A stretch of DNA of 64,000 nucleotides from Tubulanus polymorphus (GCF_964204645.1 NC_134031.1:2976001-3040000); one strand, 5' to 3'. Shown: positions 5,401 through 64,000, counted from the stretch's first letter. The notes: generated from the sequence alone by a model not told the origin. Numbers and translations are program-made.

Positions 5401-8400
5401 ATGGCCCGGCAAAGCGGAAAAATCGATCGGACTCGTTCGAATGCCGAAGAAGACCAAACTTGGCAAACTAAATGCATACCATAAGCTAATTGGACAAGTT
5501 CTGGCCGGCATTCTAAAAGCGTTATATTCGTCGCATGTATTTTGCGGACACTTCGCGGATATAGAATGATGACCATCACAGCAAGGACAAGATGGAGGTC
5601 ATCTATGTTATCATCAGAGGCATCTATAATGATTAAGCCATGTTTAAGTCACGTTTCGAGTTTTCGTCGTTGACTATTCAGGTCATAGTTTGTATTTTCT
5701 GAATATTCTTCAGACCGAATTTGAAGATTCTATTGCTGTTGAAACGATGTTACAAGCAATAAAAAGAAACCATTCTTCATGATGATATGCATTGGGTGGC
5801 GAGTTTGCAGCCATCAGTGGGTTGCTCCGGGTGAACTTTGTTTTGGTGACCATATCGTTTTTCTTCTTTTCACGAGTGGTAACGCAGTTTACAATTCTAT
5901 GAATTTCAAATGAAAATGACTCGGATGAAAGAATACTAGCATTTCGGTTGATAATCACTCGAATCGGTTCATACACACAGCGCTCAAAGATTTCGCGTTG
6001 ATTTTTCATTTCGATTTTCCGTATTACGTTTGAAAATTGTCGGCGGTTTTCGACAAGCAGCGAATCTTCACACACGCCACAATGGACCAGATCACATTCA
6101 TTACGCACGTTCCCGAGTAAAAACATACCAACGACATTTCAAAGATCTTTTGAATCGGCGATCTTTAGCGTGTCAACAGAAATTAGTTTCTCGATTTGTC
6201 GGCCTTTTAAAACACCGATTTCCTGACAATTTAAAGGCAGCTGATGCTAGATGTGGGCGCAATTTCGCGTAGAATACAGAAAATGAACTTCTACAAAGCG
6301 TTCTGAGATACACGTTAAGTGCTCAAATACTAACTACAATAGGACATGTGCAATTAGACAGTTGAGCCCGTAATATTAGCGGGTTTCGCTTTTGTTTGGT
6401 GCGATTCTTACGCTGACAATGGCCACTCGAGAGTTGTCGATTTGAAAACGAAACCACCGACAAACCAAACAGCGAAGGACTATAGCACCAACAAATTTCG
6501 AACGATTTAAAAGTTGAATTTGTTATTTCTGTCTGGGAATCTGCCTTTTGCGACCGGTCTTTATGTTTCGCCTGCGGAGTGAACTCGAGTACGTACACAT
6601 CTCAATTATCACCCCTTCAATGAAGTCGATCGCGCTGCGACAAAACCCGAGTGATTTCATCAATTAGAGAATTCCTGACTTCAAACTCAACGGTGTGAAA
6701 GTCTCAGTCAATTAAACGCAGAACACAATAGACTCTTTAAACCAGCATCGGTAATTAGATTCTAATTGACATTGACGGGGCATGATTCGATTACGACAGG
6801 CGTTTAATTACTTTATGAGTCGATATAACGTCTTTCTGATTTGAATTATTATCTGCAATTTTTTTGTGTGTTTTTAAACTGAAACAAGTCCAAAATGGAA
6901 TTACTCGACTTAGACTGGTTTTGCGTAAGTTTTAAGATTGTATGTCGAACCGAAATCTACGCATTGAACTGAACCTATAGAACAAAATGTACGACCTAAG
7001 TTGAAACAAAACGAGGCAACGTTTACTTCAGACCTCATTTCCACTATCGCCGTGTGATTATGACGTAACTGATGTATTCGGCAGCTCATATTTCATACAT
7101 TTCTTCACAATTTCTAACAAGCGAGATGAGTCACTATACCAGAAACAGTTAGCATTCACACGCAATAATATGACCCGGACTAAGATTTGGGCACGGGCCT
7201 TGTCCAACGATTTTGGTGTGTGTAAACAAGCACGGGCTCATTTGGTACCAGTGTGAACGCTTCGCCCGGACCATTATCACTCGTGTGATCGCGGCTTATA
7301 ACGTCGAAATTTAAAACGCCTCGTTTTTGTAAGCCGTGCTATTATTGTGCCCGGCGATCCTTTATAGGTGTACACTCGACATTTATACAAATACACGGGT
7401 TAAACTCCTGTCGAGTTTTTACTGCGAAAATCGAATTTCAATCCCATTCGAAATAAAAGTGGTCGGTTCGGCATCAGTGGAAGATTATGTGTTGTATCAC
7501 CTGTTCAGTCATCACAAATTTCACCGACTCTGAATCAACACGTTCCCGCGTTTCAAATTATCTACACGTCGAGGAGGATAGGCCTTATTTGTATATGCAT
7601 AGTGTACCGTTACAGTACCGCTTTCAACGATTCAATCGAAATCACGAAGGAAATATGTACGTGAAATCCATGTTATTTCCCATATGTCAAAACTAACGCC
7701 TTGTATGGAATTGCTAGGCATTCAACGCTTCATGCTTTACCTTTCGGGTGATACTCATAATATACCTGGTATTCAACTTATACGTGATGAGTTGATATTC
7801 AAAATCCGCCATCGACGCTGAATTTAAGTGAATCCGATTTTGCTAATCGTATCGTAGAAGTTGCGAGCGAATTCGTGAACTTTTAATGCAAATATAATTT
7901 AGGGTATATAGTGAGTCCTTTAGCATCAACAAGTCCAACATCTTTATTAGATCTTAAAGAATACTTTCTTTCGGCCACATATCTGAAAGCCCGTTGAAAC
8001 CTCCACATTTGTCATGTACTTGATAAAAAATACGAAGTATAAGAGGCAATGTTTTGCCTGGATACATTTTAGTGTTGTTTGTACTTCGATTTCCGATTTC
8101 AAAATCAAACCCCCTGTTTCGCTCCCGGCAGGTGCGATGGGTCTGTAAGGGACACTCAATCAAAAAATCACGCGAAATTTACCAACCAAATAAATAACAG
8201 GGGCAATCCCTATTCTAAGATCAAAAACATAATACCAAACAAAAGTTATAAGCTTCTTCGAATCGAGCAGGGAGACTGCGCTGGTCTGTGATTGAGTTCT
8301 GTAGATCGAATAGATCTTCTATGTATATATTTTTCTAGTAGTCTTATCCCAGAGAATAAAGAAGGAAACATGAACATTTTACGGAAATTCGAATATGATA

Positions 8401-29800: not shown

Positions 29801-31164
29801 ACAAGGATCGGTCCGTTTAGGCTACGAAACTGTGAACCAAGCTTGAGATAAGATTTGAGGCCAATTTTGCACGTAATTTCGGAGTTAGGAACTAAGCTGG
29901 AGACGGAGTGATACTGAAATATATAGAAGATGGCTTTTGTTAATTTCTGTCAATATTCGTCATCGTTCATATTGACATTTTTTTCATTACGGAGAATCAA
30001 AATAGACTACATTGTTTCGAAGGTTTATGCAAATATAACAGTTGACGCACTACAGACAGTTTGGTTTATTGCCGAAAAATTACAGTCAATCAGTTGTTGA
30101 TATTCAAACAAATTAGATAGATCTAAACGTGCATAACGAGTCGATTTAAACCGCGCGGTTTCCGTGTGATTTATCAGATAATGCTACTAGTGGTATGCTA
30201 ATTACCGAGTACCGAAACTATGCGCCATGTCATCGGCGATCAAGTGGTCAATTACACGTCGTAAAACAAAGCGGGAAGCACCCTTCATCCGCCCCGTGAA
30301 CGCAATTACGATTTCTGACAAACTGCGATTTGTTCCAATTTCAGCGCGGCTCCACTAATTATAATCGTACACGATAACAGCCTCGAGAGGTAGCCATCGA
30401 TTTTACCATCGAAACAAAAATGTCCTCTTAAATATGAGATGTGCGTACTTTAAGGCGCGCACACGCGAATGGGCGGCCATACCACCGGCTCGAAAAACTC
30501 GAACAAAAAACTTATCGTCTGCTCACGAGGAGCGGAAAATGACGGTTCGTGAATGGCCATCGATATACGCTGATCATCGTCGAGTAAAAACAGCGTTTAG
30601 AAATCGCCGGGGAGTCATAAACCGCGAAACAAAACTACGTTAATTAGTATTTATTGTTTGCGTCTGTGTCGGGAAGCTCGTATTTTGCTGACGCCCGACA
30701 GCGAACCAGTACGCGGCACGTTCGCCCGAGTCCCTCGTACGTGATTTTTCGGGCCGATATAGTCCGGGCAATCATCGCCGTTTCATGACGGCGAATTTTC
30801 GTTTTGCGATCGCGGGCATACGGCGCACGCCGATTGGTCCGAATCGACCCCGGGTTCACCGGAAACAAACGCCGAGCGCTAACTCGAAAACCAAAATGTG
30901 CGTATTATACAATTCATTATTCTAAGACTGTTAGATTTGTTTGTCACCGGTTCAAAGATTACTTTCAAATATGCCTGAAAATACCGTCAACGGCACGAAT
31001 TTCGCTGTGGCTGTTTTGATTGATGAGACATTTTTTGTCGCGTCGTTGAAATCAAAATGGTCGGATATCTCTGTTACTAAGTTTTAAGAACTTCTTATTT
31101 TGTCTCGTTGTTATCAGATCCCTGAAAAGTGTGAACAATTCAAAATTCAGATAATTCGACCTAC

Positions 31165-31785
31165 CTGTGTGTATGTACGTATGTTTTTTCATGTCTGACT
31201 TCTGGTGGAATCTTTTGCCGCAGTATTGGCACGGGTAGGGTCTAGTATCGCTGTGAATCAGAAGATGCGTCGACAGCGTCGACGATCGCTTGAACGTCTT
31301 TCCGCATTGCTTGCACTGGAAACTCTTCTCTTGACTATGCACGGCCCGGTGCTGGCTCAAACTCACCGCGTGTCCGAAAGTTTTGTTACAGATGTCGCAG
31401 GCGAATGGCCGTTTACCGCTATGCGACCGACGCACGTGAACTTCAAGGCCGTGTGGCGTGCTGAACATCTTGTTACATTTGACGCATTCGTAATTGCCGG
31501 TTCCGCTGACTTCCAGTTCGGATTTCAGATCTGCCGGACTCGGTGGCATCTTCGTTTCGTACGGCGTCATGCCGGATGGCGGAATGCTGACCGGCGGTCT
31601 TAGTTTAGCGTTCACAGCTTCGTGTTTGAGCAGGGCGTTACGGTGCCAGAGAAAAGGGTTTTCCAGTTGAGTAGATAGGTTCTTCATCACCGTGTGGAAG
31701 TCTGTCGTAGCGAATGGTGACCGGTATATATCGGGATAGCCGAATTTGTGTTCGTTGTGTTTCATGAACAGTTTCAAATGCTCGC
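31165..31785 (-). CDS. Gfi1: Gfi1/senseless-family gene, coding exon 3 (linker + C2H2 fingers 1-4)
   Basis: cttcag acceptor, G|GTAGG donor, 621 nt, phase 1-1. Encodes [64 protein letters not shown] and [21 protein letters not shown], diagnostic Gfi1 fingers. Confidence 0.95.
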
Positions 31786-31901
31786 CTGAAGTGGAAGAAT
31801 ACACGATAAGATTAGTCATCTATTTCAATTTTTGAGAATCGGAATCGCCTTCAAGCTTCAACACAATTCCCAAATATTCGAAGCCACGGGTTTTAAGTGG
31901 C

Positions 31902-53190: not shown

Positions 53191-53652
53191 ATTTTCGTTT
53201 CAACACATGCATAAATAAATCGCTCCTTCAAACCTGGTGGCAACGCGAGTGCTGGACTGAGTCTAATGATGCCATCAGGTTCGGATCCCTGTCGAGGGAG
53301 GATGACTGCAATGCCTATATCAGGCATCGCAGTCTTTGTCGAGACCGAAACGACTGTAACACATATTACATGAATCTTGTAGTAGAATAGTTACACTAAA
53401 ATGTGCTGGATAGATGATAGCGTGATATACACCTGACAAACATCTCTAGAGCGAGAGTTCGAAATGCATTGTCCTGCATTTTTTTGATTTTAGAAAAATA
53501 ATATTTACTTGAATTTCTTCTCAATTTGTACATAGGTTTTAATCATAACAAATCAAGTGACTTAATACGATTAATTCTTACTCCATACCATCGTATTTTC
53601 CAAAATAATGGCTACATTAACAAAACGCTTACTAAATCAAGTCAATACTTAC

Positions 53653-54451
53653 TATTTGCTGAATTGGCGACTTCTGGTCCGTAAGCCTGTAGACAATACT
53701 GTTCAATCTGTTCACGAGTCATCGCTTGCAGTTGCTGCCGATAACTATGCAGATTGCTGATGCGTCCGTCCGACCGCAGCTCCCGGCCTCTCATTTCTCC
53801 CGAAACCTCCTGTCGATCTGAAGTCGGCTCATTACGACCAAAACTACTCTGATGTTGTTCGATGCGGTTTAGGATGTAATCCCTTTTTATTCGAAGTCCC
53901 ATCTTCGCGCAGAATATCATCGGGAACGCGGCCACCAGCCCTAAAATAGCGGCCACAAGAGCCGATATACCGGCCTGATTCATTCGCAGATAGTTCGTAC
54001 ATATTCGCTGGTCGCGTTTGTTCAACCTAAACTCAATAGCTATATAACCGAGACATCGGCTGCTGTGTGCTAAGTACAACGAGATGGCGTCGGCAGTCAC
54101 ACCGATCAGGGCTATCGAGAAAAGCGCCGTTAATGTACTGACGTACAGGTTTCCTTTCAAGCATGTTCCAGACGGCCGTTTATAATTATACCCGGCCACG
54201 GCTCCGGCTGCAAAATACACGAACACCGCAACGACATACAACGCTCCTTGCAAGTTGAGTCGAAACGACGACTGATCGATGTAAAAATGAAATATTGGCG
54301 GTATGATCGACGTCGAAAAGGCAAATATATGCATTAGTATACCGTACGTCATCCAGTGCCGACCACAAGCGACTCCGTCGGCGACCAGTCGGTCTTCCGT
54401 CGTCCACCGTTCGCTGGCGTCCTCTACGTTGTCCCAATTGTAATACGGCAT
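53653..54451 (-). CDS. Four-transmembrane (CD20/MS4A-like topology) protein, exon 1
   Basis: 269-aa ORF with four hydrophobic segments (WMTYGILMHIFAFSTSIIPPIF; GALYVVAVFVYFAAGAVAGY; LYVSTLTALFSIALIGVTADAISLYL; AGISALVAAILGLVAAFPMIFC), a Cys pair in the TM3-TM4 loop, an in-frame stop upstream of the ATG, and an A|GTAAGT donor (phase 1). Family assignment from topology only. Confidence 0.75.
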
Positions 54452-55620: not shown

Positions 55621-55710
55621 TTCCACAATATAATCTTTCATCTGATAAAATCCTCAGAATGAAACCACAGCATTTCGGCTGTTGACTAACATCCATCATC
55701 AGGTGCAATG
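55621..55710 (-). mobile_element. Further copy of the same PLE terminus with a degenerate hammerhead motif
   Basis: Minus strand CAC-CTGATGA-T-GGATGTT(AGTC)AACAGCC-GAAA-TGCT-GTGG; closely similar to the arms at 1285-1386. Confidence 0.6.
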
Positions 55711-57269
55711 ACCAGGACCAAATTCCGCAGTTGTGAATTAAGATTTGACGCGGAGTTTAAACTATATGTCTGTACCGTATCTGATTCTGTAAGCGGTCCG
55801 ACTGCTGCTTCTGATGACTCCCGAGTGGTGGCAGCACTAGCCAGTGCCTTTTATGAGCCTCGGTGGTCTAGTGGAAAGAAGCGTACGCTAGCAACATGCT
55901 GGGCCGAATTCCGTATATTCGATATCATATATGTTCGGCAAAACAAGGAAAGAATATAGCCGAAAATCAGTCGGCTCATAACTTCATATCTCGATATCCT
56001 TTTTTCAAATGCAAAAAATCAAAATTGTTGGCTTCCTGGAGGGTACATTTTCTGGGTTTTGTTTTTAGAAAACCATCTATGAAAAATTGAGTGGATGGGA
56101 CAATCTGGATCTTAGAACCGTGAAAAAAAAACAAAAAGCTTTTTTTAGCCTAACCATCCGCATTGTCGATTTCGTATTGCATACAGTAAACTCCGCTTAT
56201 GTTAGATCTTTAAGAATCGCGTAAAACCTGTCCGACTTGCCAGCGACATCCTAGGATGGTATAGATATACCGGAGATAATCTGTTCAACGAATATTGAAC
56301 GAATCTCTAAACGATAGATCTTCCTCTCTAGCCAGGCCAGCCCGTATCACACACCGAGCATTTTTGCCGTTACGACTCCATTTGAAGGCAATGTTGATTA
56401 CTGCAACTAAGCTGATTAGCGCTGGTCAGTGCGACTACAACAGACGTCAATTTACACTGCACCGTCGTCCAAATCGCCATTAGTATTAAAGCATTGCTCC
56501 ACATCATCGGCTTTGGGACCACTCATTTATAAATTACACGAGTAAAGCCCATTGCACACGGTAATGAAAAAGAACGATTTTTTCCTGGTGTTTTCTGTTT
56601 CGACGAAACAAATGTTTTGCTGGGCGTTGGGCTTAAGTGTGTTCAATTAAATAATATATATATACATATATTCATGTATATTCATACACATTAGATGTAT
56701 CGATCAACTTAATAAACCGTCCAACATTTTCACTAGAATTCAAATTTTTCGAATCGTGAATTACTACACATGTCTCATATATAAAACATTTTTACCGAAG
56801 TTTTCGTAGCGTTCTCGTGGCGGCGATAGTTCAACATTGGACAAAATACGAGCTATACGCATGCGGAATCTTTATGGCGATTTCGCTAAATTAACTTGTC
56901 GCATAAGTATATAAAACCCCGGCTCCAGTCAGGTGCATTTCGTCTACATAAAGTATTTTATTGCCGGATTTATTCTGCTGAAAACGGTGGCAGTCATTAG
57001 ACTTCGGACGGTGACACAGGTGCGTTGAGTAATGGATCCGTTTATTGGATACAAGCACCGTTATAAACGACAATCAAAAGCGACTTTAGAGCGCTCTCAA
57101 ACATTGAATGTTTTTTTTCTTTTCGTACAAGCGCGTTTTGTCGCTCTCGGGAAAACTCCGAAAAGAATATTATGCCATAATGCCGTGTATTTATCTGAAA
57201 ACATGTGGTCGGCTATGGTCAAGGGAGGATGTGTCTGTTGGTTCATTAATACAATACACATGGTTCCAG

Positions 57270-57395
<126 letters not shown>

Positions 57396-57551
57396 CTGGA
57401 ATATATGTATATATACATCCTATTGTCGTTGAAACGTAACGGTTAAGAGACGGGATATTGTTTTCCGATATTTACAATGTTTCTGTCAGTTCGGGTAGCT
57501 ATGCAGCAAGCCGCGTGTGTTATTGCGATGTTTCGAGCTATCGTATTGTAC

Positions 57552-58305
57552 TGTTATGCGGCCCGAAGAAGGAACCGAAATATCGTGGGAGAGCGTATCC
57601 TTCCTCAGCTCCGCACAACGACACAAATTGAATTTGACCCGAGACCAAAAATAAATAAACGACTAAGATGCAAATACTTCGAATATAAATACTCACAACT
57701 ATTTATTATGTTACTTTCGTCTTTCCTATTTATCGACACCTTTTACAATTTCGGGTTCTAGTTCCTTCCCCTCTTGGTTTCCCAGGTGCTCTCCGACTAG
57801 TTCAGCTATGTCTCTTATTTTTATACTATCCAAAATTTGGTTTCCAAGGGACTATTCTCGTGACCAACGCCACCGCATTTGGGGAGGGCCGACGACTAAC
57901 CTCGGGACCTGATTCGCCCACCAGGCCCCCAAGAATTAATGTTCTTAGCAACCTGGTTAAGAAACAAGCCCGGAGTTGTCTCGGTTTCCAAACACGTAGA
58001 CGTTGACACTTGACTAATCCCTTAGGATTTTTCTATTGTCTTGAAAACTAACTCCAAAATATTTCTTATTAATCCGAGACATAAACTGAACTAGTAACAA
58101 AGGCAAACAACATTAAATGACCGCAAAGCCAAAACTTGCCCGTTTATGAATTCCTAGTAAACAATAACAAATCTACATTGAAAAACCCATTAGTAAAACA
58201 TGCCCGTTCTGGATTTCCTAGTGAATAGAGTTGTATGCATTGTGAACATACAACTGCTATTGAACTATGCATGTTTTATAAATATAAAAATTGGCTATCA
58301 TAACA
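57552..58305 (-). repeat. 3' LTR (754 bp)
   Basis: Termini TGTTATG...CATAACA (7-bp inverted repeat). On the minus strand, TATAAAAA at 57818-57825 and AATAAA at 57702-57707 in U3-R-U5 order. PPT abuts it. Confidence 0.88.
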
Positions 58306-58320
58306 GTACCTCCAACCCAA
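58306..58320 (-). promoter_or_regulatory. Polypurine tract
   Basis: TTGGGTTGGAGGTAC immediately precedes the TGTT start of the 3' LTR on the minus strand. Confidence 0.6.
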
Positions 58321-59399
58321 ATTCAAAGTGTCCCACTTTGTCACAAAATATCAGCAAGCATGGAGTAACAATGTTATGATTTCAAATCTGAAGCGTGACT
58401 CAATACAGTAATAATAAACCAAGGTGTCGACGATAACGTACATGACAATAAAATAATCACAACAAACACAGCAACAAGCAACATATTCATACATAGACAA
58501 AATGAAATCGTAGATAAATGAAACAAATCGCAAACAATTAGAATGTAGCAAATAATCATTGGTCTGATAAATAAATAGAGTCACAAGCGCGCAATCAGCG
58601 AAACCCGATAAACCATTAGAGTCAGAAACGCAAACGTATCCGCGATTAATTCGAAACGCTATCAACGACACGCATTGACCACAACAACGCAACGTTAAAC
58701 ATCAAAGTCCGCAACATTACGAAAAAGAGTTCGTACGAGTTACCACCGCATCGGTACCACAAAATACTTCTTTTGTTGAATACGAATCGCTTCCATATTT
58801 TTCTGCAAAACAACAGTTCATCACGAATAATACATTGTGAATGTCCAACACCGCATTGCACTTCCACCATCAACCTGACTCGGCGATCAATAGGCGCAAT
58901 TTTCGGTCAGGCGGGCGCACCAGCCATTAAACTGTCAGGCGTCGGGAATTTACATCAGTCATCGTCTTCTTGATCAGCATGTGGACTGAGAACCTTCATA
59001 AAAGTGCGGAGTTAATGGATTGGTAACGATAGAGTCTATACGTACATTATATTTGCGGAAATTTTGAGTTTAAACGTGCGAAGAAGTGAGCAATAAACAT
59101 GAGTTGACCCGCGTACGTCCCTAGAAACAGTGTCGCATACTATTCCCGAACAATAGCGAGTCCATCCGGCGCGAGTTTAAAAGAACGTCGCGAAACAAGT
59201 TTGAACATTTCGTCGGAGAACGGATATAAGAGCGCATCGTTATTCTTCACCAACATCCATCACGGAGGAAATATGTTCACCAACACGCGGAACGGAGGAA
59301 CTGTTGAGAACGGTAAGCTAAAAGCCCTTTATTACCGATATCAGATACTAAACCTACAACTCAAAACATAGCACAAGTAATCACGGCAAACAACTTGTT

Positions 59400-60000
59400 T
59401 TTCATTCAACTACCTAATATAAAAATCATTAAATCATTCAAAATATCCCTCATTATAATACTTAGGAATTTTTCTTATATATATATATATATATAGATAT
59501 ACCGAAAATATAGCACGTATTTCAACCACTCAATTCATGAATCACGAAGAACATCTTATGTTTATCTTACGGATAATGAAGATAAATTTTCCCATCATTC
59601 GCTCAACCAACATATTATTGTGTAACACATTCTTGTTGAACAATATATTTTTTCTAACATAGTTCGTTTGAATATCATTCCATTTCCCTAGCAAGAGAGT
59701 TTTTTTTTTTTTTAACATAATAATAGCATAGTTTTCCACAATTAATTCAATCAATTTAACCTCAAAATATTATCAACTTGTATGCAATTACATCTTATTT
59801 TCATGCATTTCCAGCTCAACGAATCTACGTCGGCTGCATCGGCCTTTCCAACAATCGTATCATTTACCAACACCGGGTATCCACATTCCCAGTAAGTGAT
59901 TTCATTAAAATAACTGTTAAGAACGCGTTTAATACTCAATCGTCATGGGTTAAGGAAACAATTCAAGCCATAGTGTGTGTTAGCCATTAAAAAAAAAAAT
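59400..60000 (-). pseudogene. Heavily eroded RNase H / integrase remnants of pol
   Basis: Minus-strand fragments in Gypsy order: GKADAADVDSLSW (cf. GKxNxxADALSR), LSC*G (cf. LSDQG), NMLVERMMGK..IIRK (cf. NGLVERxNxT), DS*IEWLKYVL (cf. DWDxxLPYVLF). Many stops and frameshifts; recognised by eye only. Confidence 0.5.
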
Positions 60001-60271
60001 CCATTCTCATTTCAGCGATAGAATTGGCAGCGGAATGTTGAATTATCTGTTATTGTTATTGTCATCAGTAGGCGAAATAAAGAAATGGTTACATCCAAGC
60101 GACCTGTGTTTACGTTAGTTCATTGCTAAATTAAAAATGTGACCGCGAAAAAAATGAAACGATCTCAACCAATCATAAGCTTCAAAATAATCATTCAATT
60201 ATTTCGAATCAAAATTTATCCATTAAGAAATGTCTCGTCGCTCGTCACTTAAAAATAGTCGTCATCTTTTG

Positions 60272-61387
60272 TCAGGCAGAGTTTTCTTCCTCAACTTTCA
60301 GTAACTCTAACCTGTCGAGCCTTTTACCGATTATTCTTCCACAACGATTTTCGGGAGGGCGTACCCGATGATACAGCCTCCATTCCCGGAACAGTGGCGA
60401 TTCCGGATTCGCATGATCTAATCTATGTGGCCCTAAATATGACCTTTCGTGAATATTAACGAACCGTGGTGTGAGATTAGTAGAACTTGCGTGAATATTA
60501 ATCGATGAAATTGATATTGCAGCCGTGGCACCCACGACTTTCCTTTCACGTAACTGGTGTGAAAATTCATATACAGCCTTTTTGCTGTTAATTTTTTCGA
60601 CTAGGGCCTGTGAACAATGTGCATCGACAATCTTTTCAGAAATAGGTGGAATAATTGGATTGGTCGTGCTTTGAACCGAAGTTGTTTTATTTAAATCTAT
60701 CTTGTTAGTAAAATGAATTGGACTTGCTCCCGGTAGCTTGAGAAAATTCGATCCGTAATTAATACTTGCGTTGTTAGAGCGCAAAAAGTCGGAACCTAAA
60801 ATAATATGAGTATCGATTCCTGGGACCAAGTACATAGCGTGACGAACGTCATACTCACCAATTTTAAAATTTGTGGGCACAACGCCTTTCAACTCAAATG
60901 TCTTACCATCCACCGCTCTTGCCTCCATGAACTGACCCTGCATCACGGGACCCACGGCTATTGATGGGTTTTGGCGATACCAGGCCTCATTCAGGACGCT
61001 TATTTCAGCACCGGTATCGACCAAAACGGACAATGTATTTCCCGCATGGGTACCCGTTACACGGTTAGCCACGGATGCAAGAATAGGTGGCGTGTAATGC
61101 TTGTCGCCAGACGTCCTTTGTTTGTCGAAACCTCTAGTCGGCAACGGACGGTCTATCTCCTTGTCTGTCGGAGTACGTCCTCTCAGTGACCCTTGAGGGT
61201 CCCTCACTCTCTCCTCAGGCAAAGGCTGGGTGAATTGTCGTTCGATGGTGACTGGGTGTGTGAGTGGCCTGTCATGAGGTGTTCTTAATAGAGCTCGTTG
61301 GTCTCGTAGGGATACATTGGATGGCCGGGGATAACTGGGTACATTGAGGCCGTCATCGCGCCATCCTGCTGGTGACGACCGAAACCA
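60272..61387 (-). CDS. Retropepsin-type aspartic protease ORF, reached by -1 frameshift from gag; terminates before any RT
   Basis: Frame of ORF 60272..61576 is -1 relative to gag; contains VLVDTGAEISVL and IILGSDFL protease motifs; ends EEENSA*. Confidence 0.88.
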   Translation of the reverse strand, partial: WFRSSPAGWRDDGLNVPSYPRPSNVSLRDQRALLRTPHDRPLTHPVTIERQFTQPLPEERVRDPQGSLRGRTPTDKEIDRPLPTRGFDKQRTSGDKHYTPPILASVANRVTGTHAGNTLSVLVDTGAEISVLNEAWYRQNPSIAVGPVMQGQFMEARAVDGKTFELKGVVPTNFKIGEYDVRHAMYLVPGIDTHIILGSDFLRSNNASINYGSNFLKLPGASPIHFTNKIDLNKTTSVQSTTNPIIPPISEKIVDAHCSQALVEKINSKKAVYEFSHQLRERKVVGATAAISISSINIHASSTNLTPRFVNIHERSYLGPHRLDHANPESPLFREWRLYHRVRPPENRCGRIIGKRLDRLELLKVEEENSA

Positions 61388-62529
61388 TTTCCCGGCTGCT
61401 GTTGATCTCCCCTTTGACCCTGCATGGGTGGCAGCGGGTGTTGTGGCGGCGGGTGTTGTGGCGACCGCGGATATATCCTCCCCTCTTGTGGCTCTCTGTA
61501 TCCGTACTGTCGACCCGTATCTGGCGTATATGGACAGAACTTCCCATAGTGACCCGGTTGACCACACCTGAAACAATTATTGTGCCCCGCGAGATTTCTT
61601 TCTCTCCTAGCCGGGTAAGAACGTCGGGGCTCAAAGCGTGGGTTTTGGTCGTAACGAGGTCTCGCATCTTGCCATCGAGGGGCGCTGCGATTTCGACCTG
61701 GGGATTGTCGAATGAACGTGTCCCCCCGTCGATCACCTCTCATAGGCCTCTGTGCTTGCCTCTCACCCCTGTCACTAGGCTCTCTCAGCCGTAAGAACTG
61801 AGAGAACATTCCTTTTATCTCCTCCATGGTCTTGAGGAGTGACGCATCAGTTGGGGAGGTCTGGTTCACTGTCGGTTTCGTCAGATCTCGATCAGTCCAC
61901 TGCTCGGCAGTCCTCGCGTGCTCGACTGCCATTGAAAACGTGTCGGGCCTCATCATCATCACGTCCTTCCTGATCGCATTGTCCAGCCCGTTGAGAAAGA
62001 CGACCAATTTGTCTCGGTCCGATTTTTGTAATTTGTGAGCCAGTCGGTCCACTCGCTCCGAATAATCATCGACTGACTCCCCTTTCTTCTGCCGAAGTCC
62101 GGAGAAGTCAGTCTCCTCTCGGAGTCGCAGACTGTCCGACTCAAAGTGGTCCCTAAAAGAATTAACAATACTAGCAAATTTTGTAGATCGATCTATGACT
62201 AAATCGTCATAGAACCGTCTAGCCGGACCCTCTAAATATTGGAACATGAAATTTTTACATTGGTCGTCCGTCCAACCTCTCGCTTTAGCTACATTGTCAT
62301 ACGTTCGCAACCATTGCGAAAAGTCACTCCCGTTTGGTCTACCTGAAAATTTCGGGATGGAAACCACATCCCCAAGGTTTGTCGAACTACCTAGTCGTTC
62401 GGCGATCAGGAGGAGTATATCTCGTTCTGACATGCTCGTCCCCGTCGACGAACCAGCCCCCGCTGTCGGGCTCTGCGGGTCGTCAATATCCTCATGAGCC
62501 GTCTGACTCCTAGTACTCGGTGGCGGCAT
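61285..62529 (-). CDS. gag: Retrotransposon Gag (capsid + CCHC zinc knuckle), 414 aa
   Basis: IPKFSG...FSQWLRTYDNVAKARGW...YLEGPARRFY and LRQKKGESVDDYSERV...FLNGL capsid motifs; CFRCGQPGHYGKFC knuckle; open frame. Confidence 0.92.
   Translation of the reverse strand: MPPPSTRSQTAHEDIDDPQSPTAGAGSSTGTSMSERDILLLIAERLGSSTNLGDVVSIPKFSGRPNGSDFSQWLRTYDNVAKARGWTDDQCKNFMFQYLEGPARRFYDDLVIDRSTKFASIVNSFRDHFESDSLRLREETDFSGLRQKKGESVDDYSERVDRLAHKLQKSDRDKLVVFLNGLDNAIRKDVMMMRPDTFSMAVEHARTAEQWTDRDLTKPTVNQTSPTDASLLKTMEEIKGMFSQFLRLREPSDRGERQAQRPMRGDRRGDTFIRQSPGRNRSAPRWQDARPRYDQNPRFEPRRSYPARRERNLAGHNNCFRCGQPGHYGKFCPYTPDTGRQYGYREPQEGRIYPRSPQHPPPQHPLPPMQGQRGDQQQPGNGFGRHQQDGAMTASMYPVIPGHPMYPYETNELY
61348..61393 (-). 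promoter_or_regulatory. -1 programmed ribosomal frameshift signal
   Basis: G GGA AAU heptamer in the gag frame (61387-61393), 6-nt spacer, then 8-bp stem GGUCGUCA/UGACGGCC (61373-61380 with 61348-61355). Confidence 0.75.
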
Positions 62530-62822
62530 ATTGAATTATAAATTAACTCGGAGAAAAGAAAGTATAAAAAAAAACAGAGTAAAACAGAATATTAAAACAG
62601 AGCGTTCCTAAAAATGACCGCAACGCTAATAGTGGCTGCAATTCAAAATCTATGCAATTACAGTTTCGACACAGATTCTTATAAACCTTTCTATAAACCT
62701 ATTATCCCCAATATGGGATCGATATCTACACTATCGTAAATTATTTCGCGTAGCTTTACTACCGAAAATACTATATCTTAATCTATAATTCAGTACTGAT
62801 ATCAGTTATCAACACTATACCC

Positions 62823-63010
62823 TCAATATCGGAAACAAAATCATCGATATTGGATTTCATTTAAACCATATCCCTTCTCCTCAGTATCGGAATTTCCCGT
62901 CAATACTGGAATGTCACCATCAATATTGGAATATCACATCAACATTGGAATCTATCGTTAACTATTTAATTATTCCAAAATACTGGAATTTTCCATCAGC
63001 ATCGGAACAT
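62823..63010. repeat. Degenerate ~19-21-bp tandem repeats in the element's 5' leader
   Basis: About 8 copies of a TCAATATTGGAAT-like core (tcaatatcggaa, tcgatattgga, tcagtatcggaat, tcaatactggaat, tcaatattggaat, tcaacattggaat, aaaatactggaat, tcagcatcggaa). Confidence 0.65.
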
Positions 63011-63382
63011 TAGCTTGACTGTTCAACTCTTCGTACTACCTAAACCATTAATTAACAAAATACTCAGTACTGAGCGACAACCTCGGTGACATATATCAAA
63101 ATATCATCACAATAGGTAACTATATGTATTTTTAAAAACCTTCTATTGCGGTGCATATAGCTACCCATATCAATAAAAAATAACCTAAAAAATAATTTAT
63201 ATCAAACCAGTAGTAATTAGAATTCAATTCCTAATTAAATCATCAATTAAAATAATAAATCGCTATACCATAATCACTAATTAATCAAAATACTCATTCT
63301 CTAATAAACAATTAACCCTTCTGTAAACTTTAAGTAAATAATCTTATCTAACTATCTGACTGAATAAAAAAATAACTAAAGG

Positions 63383-63400
63383 TCCCGGGTTTCGGCACCA
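63383..63400 (-). promoter_or_regulatory. Primer-binding site complementary to tRNA-Phe 3' end
   Basis: TGGTGCCGAAACCCGGGA, 4 nt inside the 5' LTR; complement of the eukaryotic tRNA-Phe 3' end UCCCGGGUUUCGGCACCA. Confidence 0.88.
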
Positions 63401-63404
63401 AATC

Positions 63405-64000
63405 TGTTATGCGGCCCGAAGAAGGAACCGAAATATCGTGGGAGAGCGTATCCTTCCTCAGCTCCGCACAACGACACAAATTGAATTTGACCCGAGACCA
63501 AAAATAAATAAACGACTAAGATGCAAATACTTCGAATATAAATACTCACAACTATTTATTATGTTACTTTCGTCTTTCCTATTTATCGACACCTTTTACA
63601 ATTTCGGGTTCTAGTTCCTTCCCCTCTTGGTTTCCCAGGTGCTCTCCGACTAGTTCAGCTATGTCTCTTATTTTTATACTATCCAAAATTTGGTTTCCAA
63701 GGGACTATTCTCGTGACCAACGCCACCGCATTTGGGGAGGGCCGACGACTAACCTCGGGACCTGATTCGCCCACCAGGCCCCCAAGAATTAATGTTCTTA
63801 GCAACCTGGTTAAGAAACAAGCCCGGAGTTGTCTCGGTTTCCAAACACGTAGACGTTGACACTTGACTAATCCCTTAGGATTTTTCTATTGTCTTGAAAA
63901 CTAACTCCAAAATATTTCTTATTAATCCGAGACATAAACTGAACTAGTAACAAAGGCAAACAACATTAAATGACCGCAAAGCCAAAACTTGCCCGTTTAT
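63405..64000 (-). repeat. 5' LTR (partial; predicted to end near 64158)
   Basis: Matches 57552-58147; followed on the minus strand by a 4-nt spacer and the PBS. Confidence 0.92.

Follow-up and report, generated by a model that had tools for sequence, protein, structure and literature searches.

Non-autonomous long terminal repeat (LTR) elements are usually viewed as short-lived wrecks of their helpers. The question raised by one such element, which lies on the minus strand of chromosome OZ123232.1 (GCA_964204645.2) of the palaeonemertean ribbon worm Tubulanus polymorphus and is 6,607 bp in length, is whether a retrotransposon reduced to Gag and a protease (PR) may instead belong to a lasting lineage. 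The element is located at one end of the 64-kb stretch of DNA analysed here (the window), which cuts its 5' LTR; the rest of this LTR was read from the same public locus (L007). It is most likely a non-autonomous Ty3/Gypsy (Metaviridae) retrotransposon that has kept Gag and a frameshifted Gag-PR fusion and obtains the functions of pol from another element.

Structure of the integrated element

The locus contains a genuine, recently integrated LTR element. Its two LTRs of 754 bp each have the inverted TG...CA termini TGTTATG...CATAACA. The 3' LTR occupies window positions 57552–58305 (minus strand, as do all features of the element given below) and the 5' LTR is visible over 596 bp (63405–64000), running on to the window-equivalent position 64158 (L007:294). 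The public record is 100% identical to the window over 21,569 bases (64000–42432) and extends 451 bases past it, supplying the missing end, and the complete 5' LTR (L007:294–1047) equals the 3' LTR (58305–57552) at 754 of 754 positions. Inside the window, 57551–58147 and 63404–64000 align with no mismatch. A 4-bp target duplication, GTAC, flanks both ends, with its 3' copy at 57548–57551 and its 5' copy beyond the window at L007:290–293. A preliminary description, made from the sequence alone, had noted the identity of the visible 596 bp, placed the LTR end near 64158 and suggested that the bases beyond it might repeat the left flank; the identity was borne out, the predicted end proved exact and the repeat was found.

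Zero differences over 754 sites put the 95% upper bound for LTR divergence at approximately 0.4%. Under commonly assumed neutral rates, which are an assumption here as well, the age of the insertion is of the order of one million years or less. The intact target duplication together with the identical LTRs indicates a single, recent insertion of the integrase type, and the very recent insertion proposed in the preliminary description agrees with these features and with the open Gag and PR frames.

The gag frame (61285–62529) encodes 414 amino acids, with the capsid at residues ~58–233 and a CCHC knuckle at residues 318–333, and matches the Pfam families Retrotrans_gag (PF03732), Ty3_capsid (PF19259) and zf-CCHC (PF00098). 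The PR frame, shifted by -1, is open over 60272–61576 (stop codon included) and carries the sequence DTGA together with retropepsin Pfam matches (PF13975). The retropepsin core spans 60779–61057, with the DTG triad at 61018–61010 and an ILGSDFL motif. A candidate -1 slippery heptamer, G_GGA_AAT (61387–61393), is located in the gag/PR overlap in phase with gag. Slippage at this site would leave ~371 codons to be read in the PR frame, and the predicted fusion would comprise 381 and 371 residues, or 752 amino acids in total. In all searches the Gag and PR frames served as separate queries.

The AlphaFold model of PR and the region following it has a predicted local distance difference test (pLDDT) score of 90.8. 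The PDB matches to its PR half are led by retropepsin-like proteases of the DDI1 and retroviral types, with template modelling (TM) scores of 0.75–0.8 relative to the target. PR is followed by a β-barrel domain of ~100 residues (60419–60685), which is dUTPase-like by its predicted fold and is likewise found between PR and the reverse transcriptase (RT) in autonomous Gypsy Pols. When the model of this domain was compared with the PDB by Foldseek, all listed matches were trimeric dUTPases; these were weak, with E-values of 5e-4 to 3e-3, TM scores of 0.42–0.57 and sequence identity of 7–14%, and no dUTPase Pfam match was obtained at E up to 1. We read the domain as a barrel resembling dUTPases, probably without catalytic activity. 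In some fungal Gypsy elements, true dUTPases have been reported between PR and RT (PMC2864245).

The homology to autonomous Pols ends at the motif ...YLGPH, approximately 130 residues before their RVT_1 domain. Between the end of the PR frame and the 3' LTR lies an AT-rich internal region of 1,966 bp (58306–60271) with no detectable coding capacity. This region contains no open reading frame (ORF) longer than 113 amino acids, its ORFs have no Pfam match, and none of 19 full-length Gypsy Pols matched it in tblastn at E up to 1. The env-like ORFs of relatives likewise gave no meaningful match to this region by tblastn at E up to 10, all hits from that search being stretches of 16–28 residues with an E-value of 0.69 or worse and located outside it. 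Elsewhere in the window, tblastn with the 19 Pols and a Pfam search of all ORFs found no signal of RT, RNase H, integrase or env either.

The signals for priming have been retained. An 18-nt primer binding site (PBS), TGGTGCCGAAACCCGGGA (63383–63400), begins with TGG four bases after the 5' LTR and would pair with the 3' end of metazoan tRNA-Phe, its putative primer. A purine-rich tract, GGGTTGGAGG (58309–58318), close to the 3' LTR is a weak candidate for the polypurine tract (PPT). These two signals, the intact gag of 414 amino acids, the open protease frame with its stop at 60272, a predicted Gag-PR fusion of ~750 amino acids and the ~2 kb up to the 3' LTR devoid of RT, RNase H and integrase had all been put forward in the preliminary description, and each of them stands, the PPT as a weak candidate.

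The element thus has the LTRs, the PBS and PPT, a Gag with capsid and CCHC knuckle, and the retropepsin expected of Ty3/Gypsy, without the RT-RNase H-integrase order of this group; it is a derivative of Ty3/Gypsy and not an autonomous member. Having no RT, RNase H or integrase, it is unable to copy or integrate by itself, so another element must have provided, in trans, the enzymes for the reverse transcription and integration of the present copy. In the proposed mechanism, translation would yield Gag, with its capsid and CCHC nucleocapsid, and, by a -1 frameshift at G_GGA_AAT, the 752-residue Gag-PR fusion bearing the retropepsin and the small dUTPase-like barrel. Gag and PR would build and mature a particle that packages the element's own RNA, for which the cis signals (LTR termini, tRNA-Phe-type PBS and purine tract) are kept, and the Gag-Pol of a helper with a compatible Gag would be co-assembled into that particle.

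Relatives and the origin of the missing pol

A Gag word search and a Gag profile search, both covering proteins of 228–724 amino acids, each returned one cluster only, referred to here as the sister family. It consists of three copies in metagenome-type records, L001 (SMVA01129763.1 of GCA_004566115.1), L002 (an ENA metagenome assembly, ERZ27251146) and L006 (a JGI metagenome, Ga0114949). The last of these was considered as a third lineage and rejected, being a frameshifted copy of the sister family. A metagenome scan with the Gag profile gave copies of this family only, and a scan of viral contigs gave nothing. The upstream flanks of L001 and L002 are unrelated before their common start TGTTATGAAAC, which indicates that the two are independent insertions. 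They differ by two substitutions in gag and two in the PR ORF; their interiors are 0.2–0.3% apart and the post-PR stretch 2.5%. Their LTRs diverge by 4.9%, which, compared with the interiors, hints at recombination between subfamilies.

The layout of the sister family follows that of the Tubulanus element. The LTR starts in the same way, with TGTTATGA, and is directly followed by a PBS, the first 12–16 bases of which are as in Tubulanus. The two families are 37–42% identical in Gag and 49% in the PR core. In the gag/PR overlap of the sister copies, G_GGA_AAC occurs in phase; the Gag tail around this site is poorly conserved between the families, yet each has an in-phase slippery heptamer. In the post-PR domain, identity is 33% as far as the final motif, which is the same in both, and past it the sister Pol frame continues for 21 unrelated residues before its stop, compared with 41 in Tubulanus. 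At least 1,020 bases 3' of the sister Pol frame, common to L001 and L002, contain no RT signal. Synonymous sites are saturated between the two families, and their LTR bodies, leaders and 3' regions have diverged beyond detection.

A full-library search with the PR frame among 1.84 billion representatives returned 309 relatives. The best match is again the sister family, with 45% identity, and none is closer; the best matches that bear an RT are 24–31% identical. According to Pfam, the RT-bearing relatives are Gypsy Pols, nearly all with a terminal chromodomain, and the contigs of some bear a third ORF. A quick maximum-likelihood tree was built from 137 PR cores. The PRs of Tubulanus and of the sister family form a pair in it, with a Shimodaira-Hasegawa-like approximate likelihood ratio test (SH-aLRT) value of 99, and this pair falls in a group of 11 that includes chromodomain-bearing autonomous Gypsy elements (support 90). 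The Gags of two autonomous relatives are 23–27% identical to the Tubulanus Gag, from which it follows that Gag and PR are of common ancestry. Four of these chromodomain Ty3/Gypsy elements (P0006/L008, P0072/L009, P0004/L003 and P0005/L004) have the same PR and post-PR barrel as the Tubulanus element, but they also possess RT, RNase H, integrase, the chromodomain and in some cases a third ORF, and they lack the tRNA-Phe-type PBS motif. No Tubulanus protein occurs among the source names of 20 hits.

Several other observations were made among these records. One of the four, L008 (1–11330), is a TARA Oceans scaffold that represents a tandem or circular assembly with a period of 9,919 bp, and its third ORF encodes 846 residues. 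In L003, a weak Baculo_F-like ORF follows the integrase (6269–7012). Another candidate relative, P0008, was rejected as a trypanosome FAZ1 repeat protein that matched the low-complexity tail.

The break point, PBS and frameshift site shared by the two families, together with their mutual closest kinship, argue against a deletion private to the Tubulanus copy and suggest a loss of pol that predates the split of the families; this would have been a single event. The preliminary description had taken pol to be lost from a recently mobile element. Its absence is confirmed, but on the basis of these comparisons the loss is probably old and common to the sister family, and not recent. Gag and PR can still be recognised, whereas similarity has vanished from LTR bodies, leaders and 3' regions, which is what selection on the proteins would be expected to produce. 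A bolder proposal, which is made only tentatively, is that the two families represent an old, self-sustaining, capsid-bearing satellite lineage of marine invertebrates, in which RT, RNase H and integrase disappeared before the split and Gag, the frameshift and PR have been under selection. Such selection would act because the lineage packages and matures its own particles and takes only a polymerase and an integrase from helpers. The preliminary description had likewise proposed a non-autonomous lineage borrowing from a helper; its non-autonomous character is supported by the lack of RT and integrase, and the idea of a lineage by the same layout in the sister family.

A number of points weigh against this interpretation. 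No helper was found in the window or among the closest relatives, and the closest autonomous relatives, with PR identities of only 24–31%, stem from other samples and are without this PBS, no such motif having been detected upstream of gag in their contigs. A single copy is seen in the host in the data at hand, that is, within the 64-kb window, where no further copies exist; exact look-ups in public assemblies had neither the Gag nor the PR ORF on record. The purine tract is short (10 nt) and is separated from the LTR by 3 nt. The RNA 3' of the slippery sites does not fold more stably than shuffled sequences do (z = -0.4 and -0.1), and with these scores the RNA-structure test is uninformative on frameshifting. 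The contigs of the sister family stop short of the 3' LTR and thus show an incomplete structure, and in both L001 and L002 the PR core is separated from the post-PR domain by a frameshift of 1 nt (L001:2867–3121 and L002:3923–4378), L001 having one more break. A programmed frameshift was considered here and rejected, since there is no in-phase slippery site at that place, which makes it a mutation; the sister family may therefore be decaying.

Among the alternatives, the one that survives best, although it is unlikely, is that the two Gag-PR-only families arose independently and in fairly recent time, each out of an autonomous partner of its own, the common layout being a convergence. Pol could have been removed at the PR/RT boundary by deletion, or through an RNA that was spliced or had switched template, and domain boundaries are natural break points. 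The unrelated tails past the last homologous motif (41 and 21 residues) and the 3' internal regions without similarity would fit such a history. Proteins of nemertean transposable elements are also sparsely represented in databases, so that missing partners prove little and separate derivations may have occurred. On the other hand, the two PRs are closest to each other, with 49% identity and the SH-aLRT value of 99, no RT-bearing protein among the 1.84 billion representatives is closer than 31%, and neither family has kept a remnant of pol at the junction.

Far less probable is a one-off deletion, in which a full-length Gypsy copy lost its pol at this locus after insertion. The single copy visible in the data at hand would be compatible with it, but LTRs identical at all 754 positions leave very little time since insertion, and the 1,966 bp found in place of pol are unrelated to the RT, RNase H, integrase or env of relatives. 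The sister family, moreover, shows the same layout in independent insertions.

Slighter still is the chance that the insertion is old and that its LTRs look identical because the assembly collapsed them or because gene conversion has acted between them. Gene conversion between LTRs does occur in general. However, the 4-bp target duplication is perfect and both long ORFs are intact, where an old element would be expected to have accumulated stops in 785 codons, and the window and the public chromosome record are alike over the entire 21.6 kb.

That the locus is a domesticated, immobile host Gag-protease gene of the PEG10/RTL3 type, as the order of Gag, G_GGA_AAY -1 frameshift and PR and a PEG10-type capsid Pfam match might suggest, can practically be dismissed, because such genes have no LTR, PBS or target duplication and occupy fixed orthologous loci, while the identical LTRs, PBS and target duplication found here are those of a recent transposition.

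Remaining features of the element and its surroundings

The 3' LTR has a candidate TATA sequence at 57825–57814 and a candidate AATAAA at 57707–57702, both recognized by eye only. Between the PBS and gag is an untranslated, AT-rich leader (62530–63382). With its 853 nt it is unusually long, the leader of the sister family measuring only ~170 nt, and it includes a 19-nt tandem repeat of 3.7 copies (62881–62951). At the other end of the interior, a 16-nt near-copy of the LTR terminus is found in inverted orientation at 58372–58387, 66 nt into the 3' internal region. The PR frame closes with a C-terminal tail of 44 residues (60275–60406), which follows the end of the Pol homology, has no homologue and is modelled with low confidence; 41 of the 44 lie beyond the end of the alignment with the sister family, and the stop codon comes next. 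An Rfam scan of the window detected neither a ribozyme nor any other RNA family.

A long (TA)n microsatellite (57272–57400) lies 150 bp from the insertion site. The host gene LOC141908700 (53642–54451, minus strand), a predicted membrane protein in the same orientation as the element, starts approximately 3.1 kb downstream of the 3' LTR; it was recognized from a 99% match to a single-exon ORF of 269 amino acids (53645–54451), and L007 is the locus that encodes it. The gene has an intron, and the search was made with this single ORF. Farther away, a Gfi-1/Senseless-type C2H2 zinc-finger exon (31052–31819, minus strand) matches PDB entry 2kmk over 55 residues with an E-value of 1e-33, which is consistent with an animal genome. 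A 49-bp inverted match (90%) connects 1340–1388 with 55663–55711, 54 kb apart.

Comparison with known systems

Taken as a non-autonomous Gag-PR retrotransposon supplied in trans, the element is a recent transposer with kin of the same layout at less than 50% protein identity, which suggests that Gag-PR-only elements can persist as lineages. Such persistence would mean that the retained capsid and protease are under selection. The Gag-Pol of the helper must enter the particles, for which co-assembly through a compatible Gag would be the natural route, and this provides a specific target in the search for helpers.

Mouse IAP I-delta-1 and ETn/MusD are defective LTR elements that actively transpose on the proteins of full-length relatives. 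These arose recently by deletion and barely differ from their helpers, whereas the layout of the Tubulanus element looks old and no close helper of it is known. The element also differs from large retrotransposon derivatives (LARD), which are characterized by a long non-coding internal region, since both of its long reading frames are intact.

Terminal-repeat retrotransposons with GAG domain (TR-GAG) are plant elements shorter than 4 kb with one Gag ORF and no similarity to aspartic proteases (Chaparro et al. 2015, PMC4350172). As in the Tubulanus element, they combine LTRs, PBS, PPT and a Gag ORF with the lack of a polymerase, and they are regarded as semi-autonomous. Their definition also asks for two or more copies per genome; of the sister family, three copies are on record. 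The Tubulanus element does not belong to this group, as it has a protease frame, is 6,607 bp long compared with 4 kb at most, and resides in an animal.

Closer are the 28 GAG/PROT-only non-autonomous LTR families described in sugar beet (PMC13570524). In these, too, only Gag and protease remain, RT, RNase H and integrase being absent, and mobilisation is assumed to occur in trans. The Tubulanus element works like this plant group. It differs in its animal host, in the intact -1 frameshift arrangement, in the additional dUTPase-like domain and in the recurrence of its layout in a relative only 37–49% identical. Literature searches found no Gag-PR-only LTR family in animals, which is a weak negative.

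The heptamer of PEG10, G_GGA_AAC, is the one present in the sister family. PEG10 and RTL3, which are mammalian genes domesticated from Metaviridae (PMC11011659), share with the Tubulanus element the succession of Gag, -1 frameshift and protease and the lack of RT and integrase. They are, however, fixed host genes without LTRs, whereas the Tubulanus element is mobile and has identical LTRs and a target duplication; the layout that was domesticated in PEG10 is seen here in a form that still moves.

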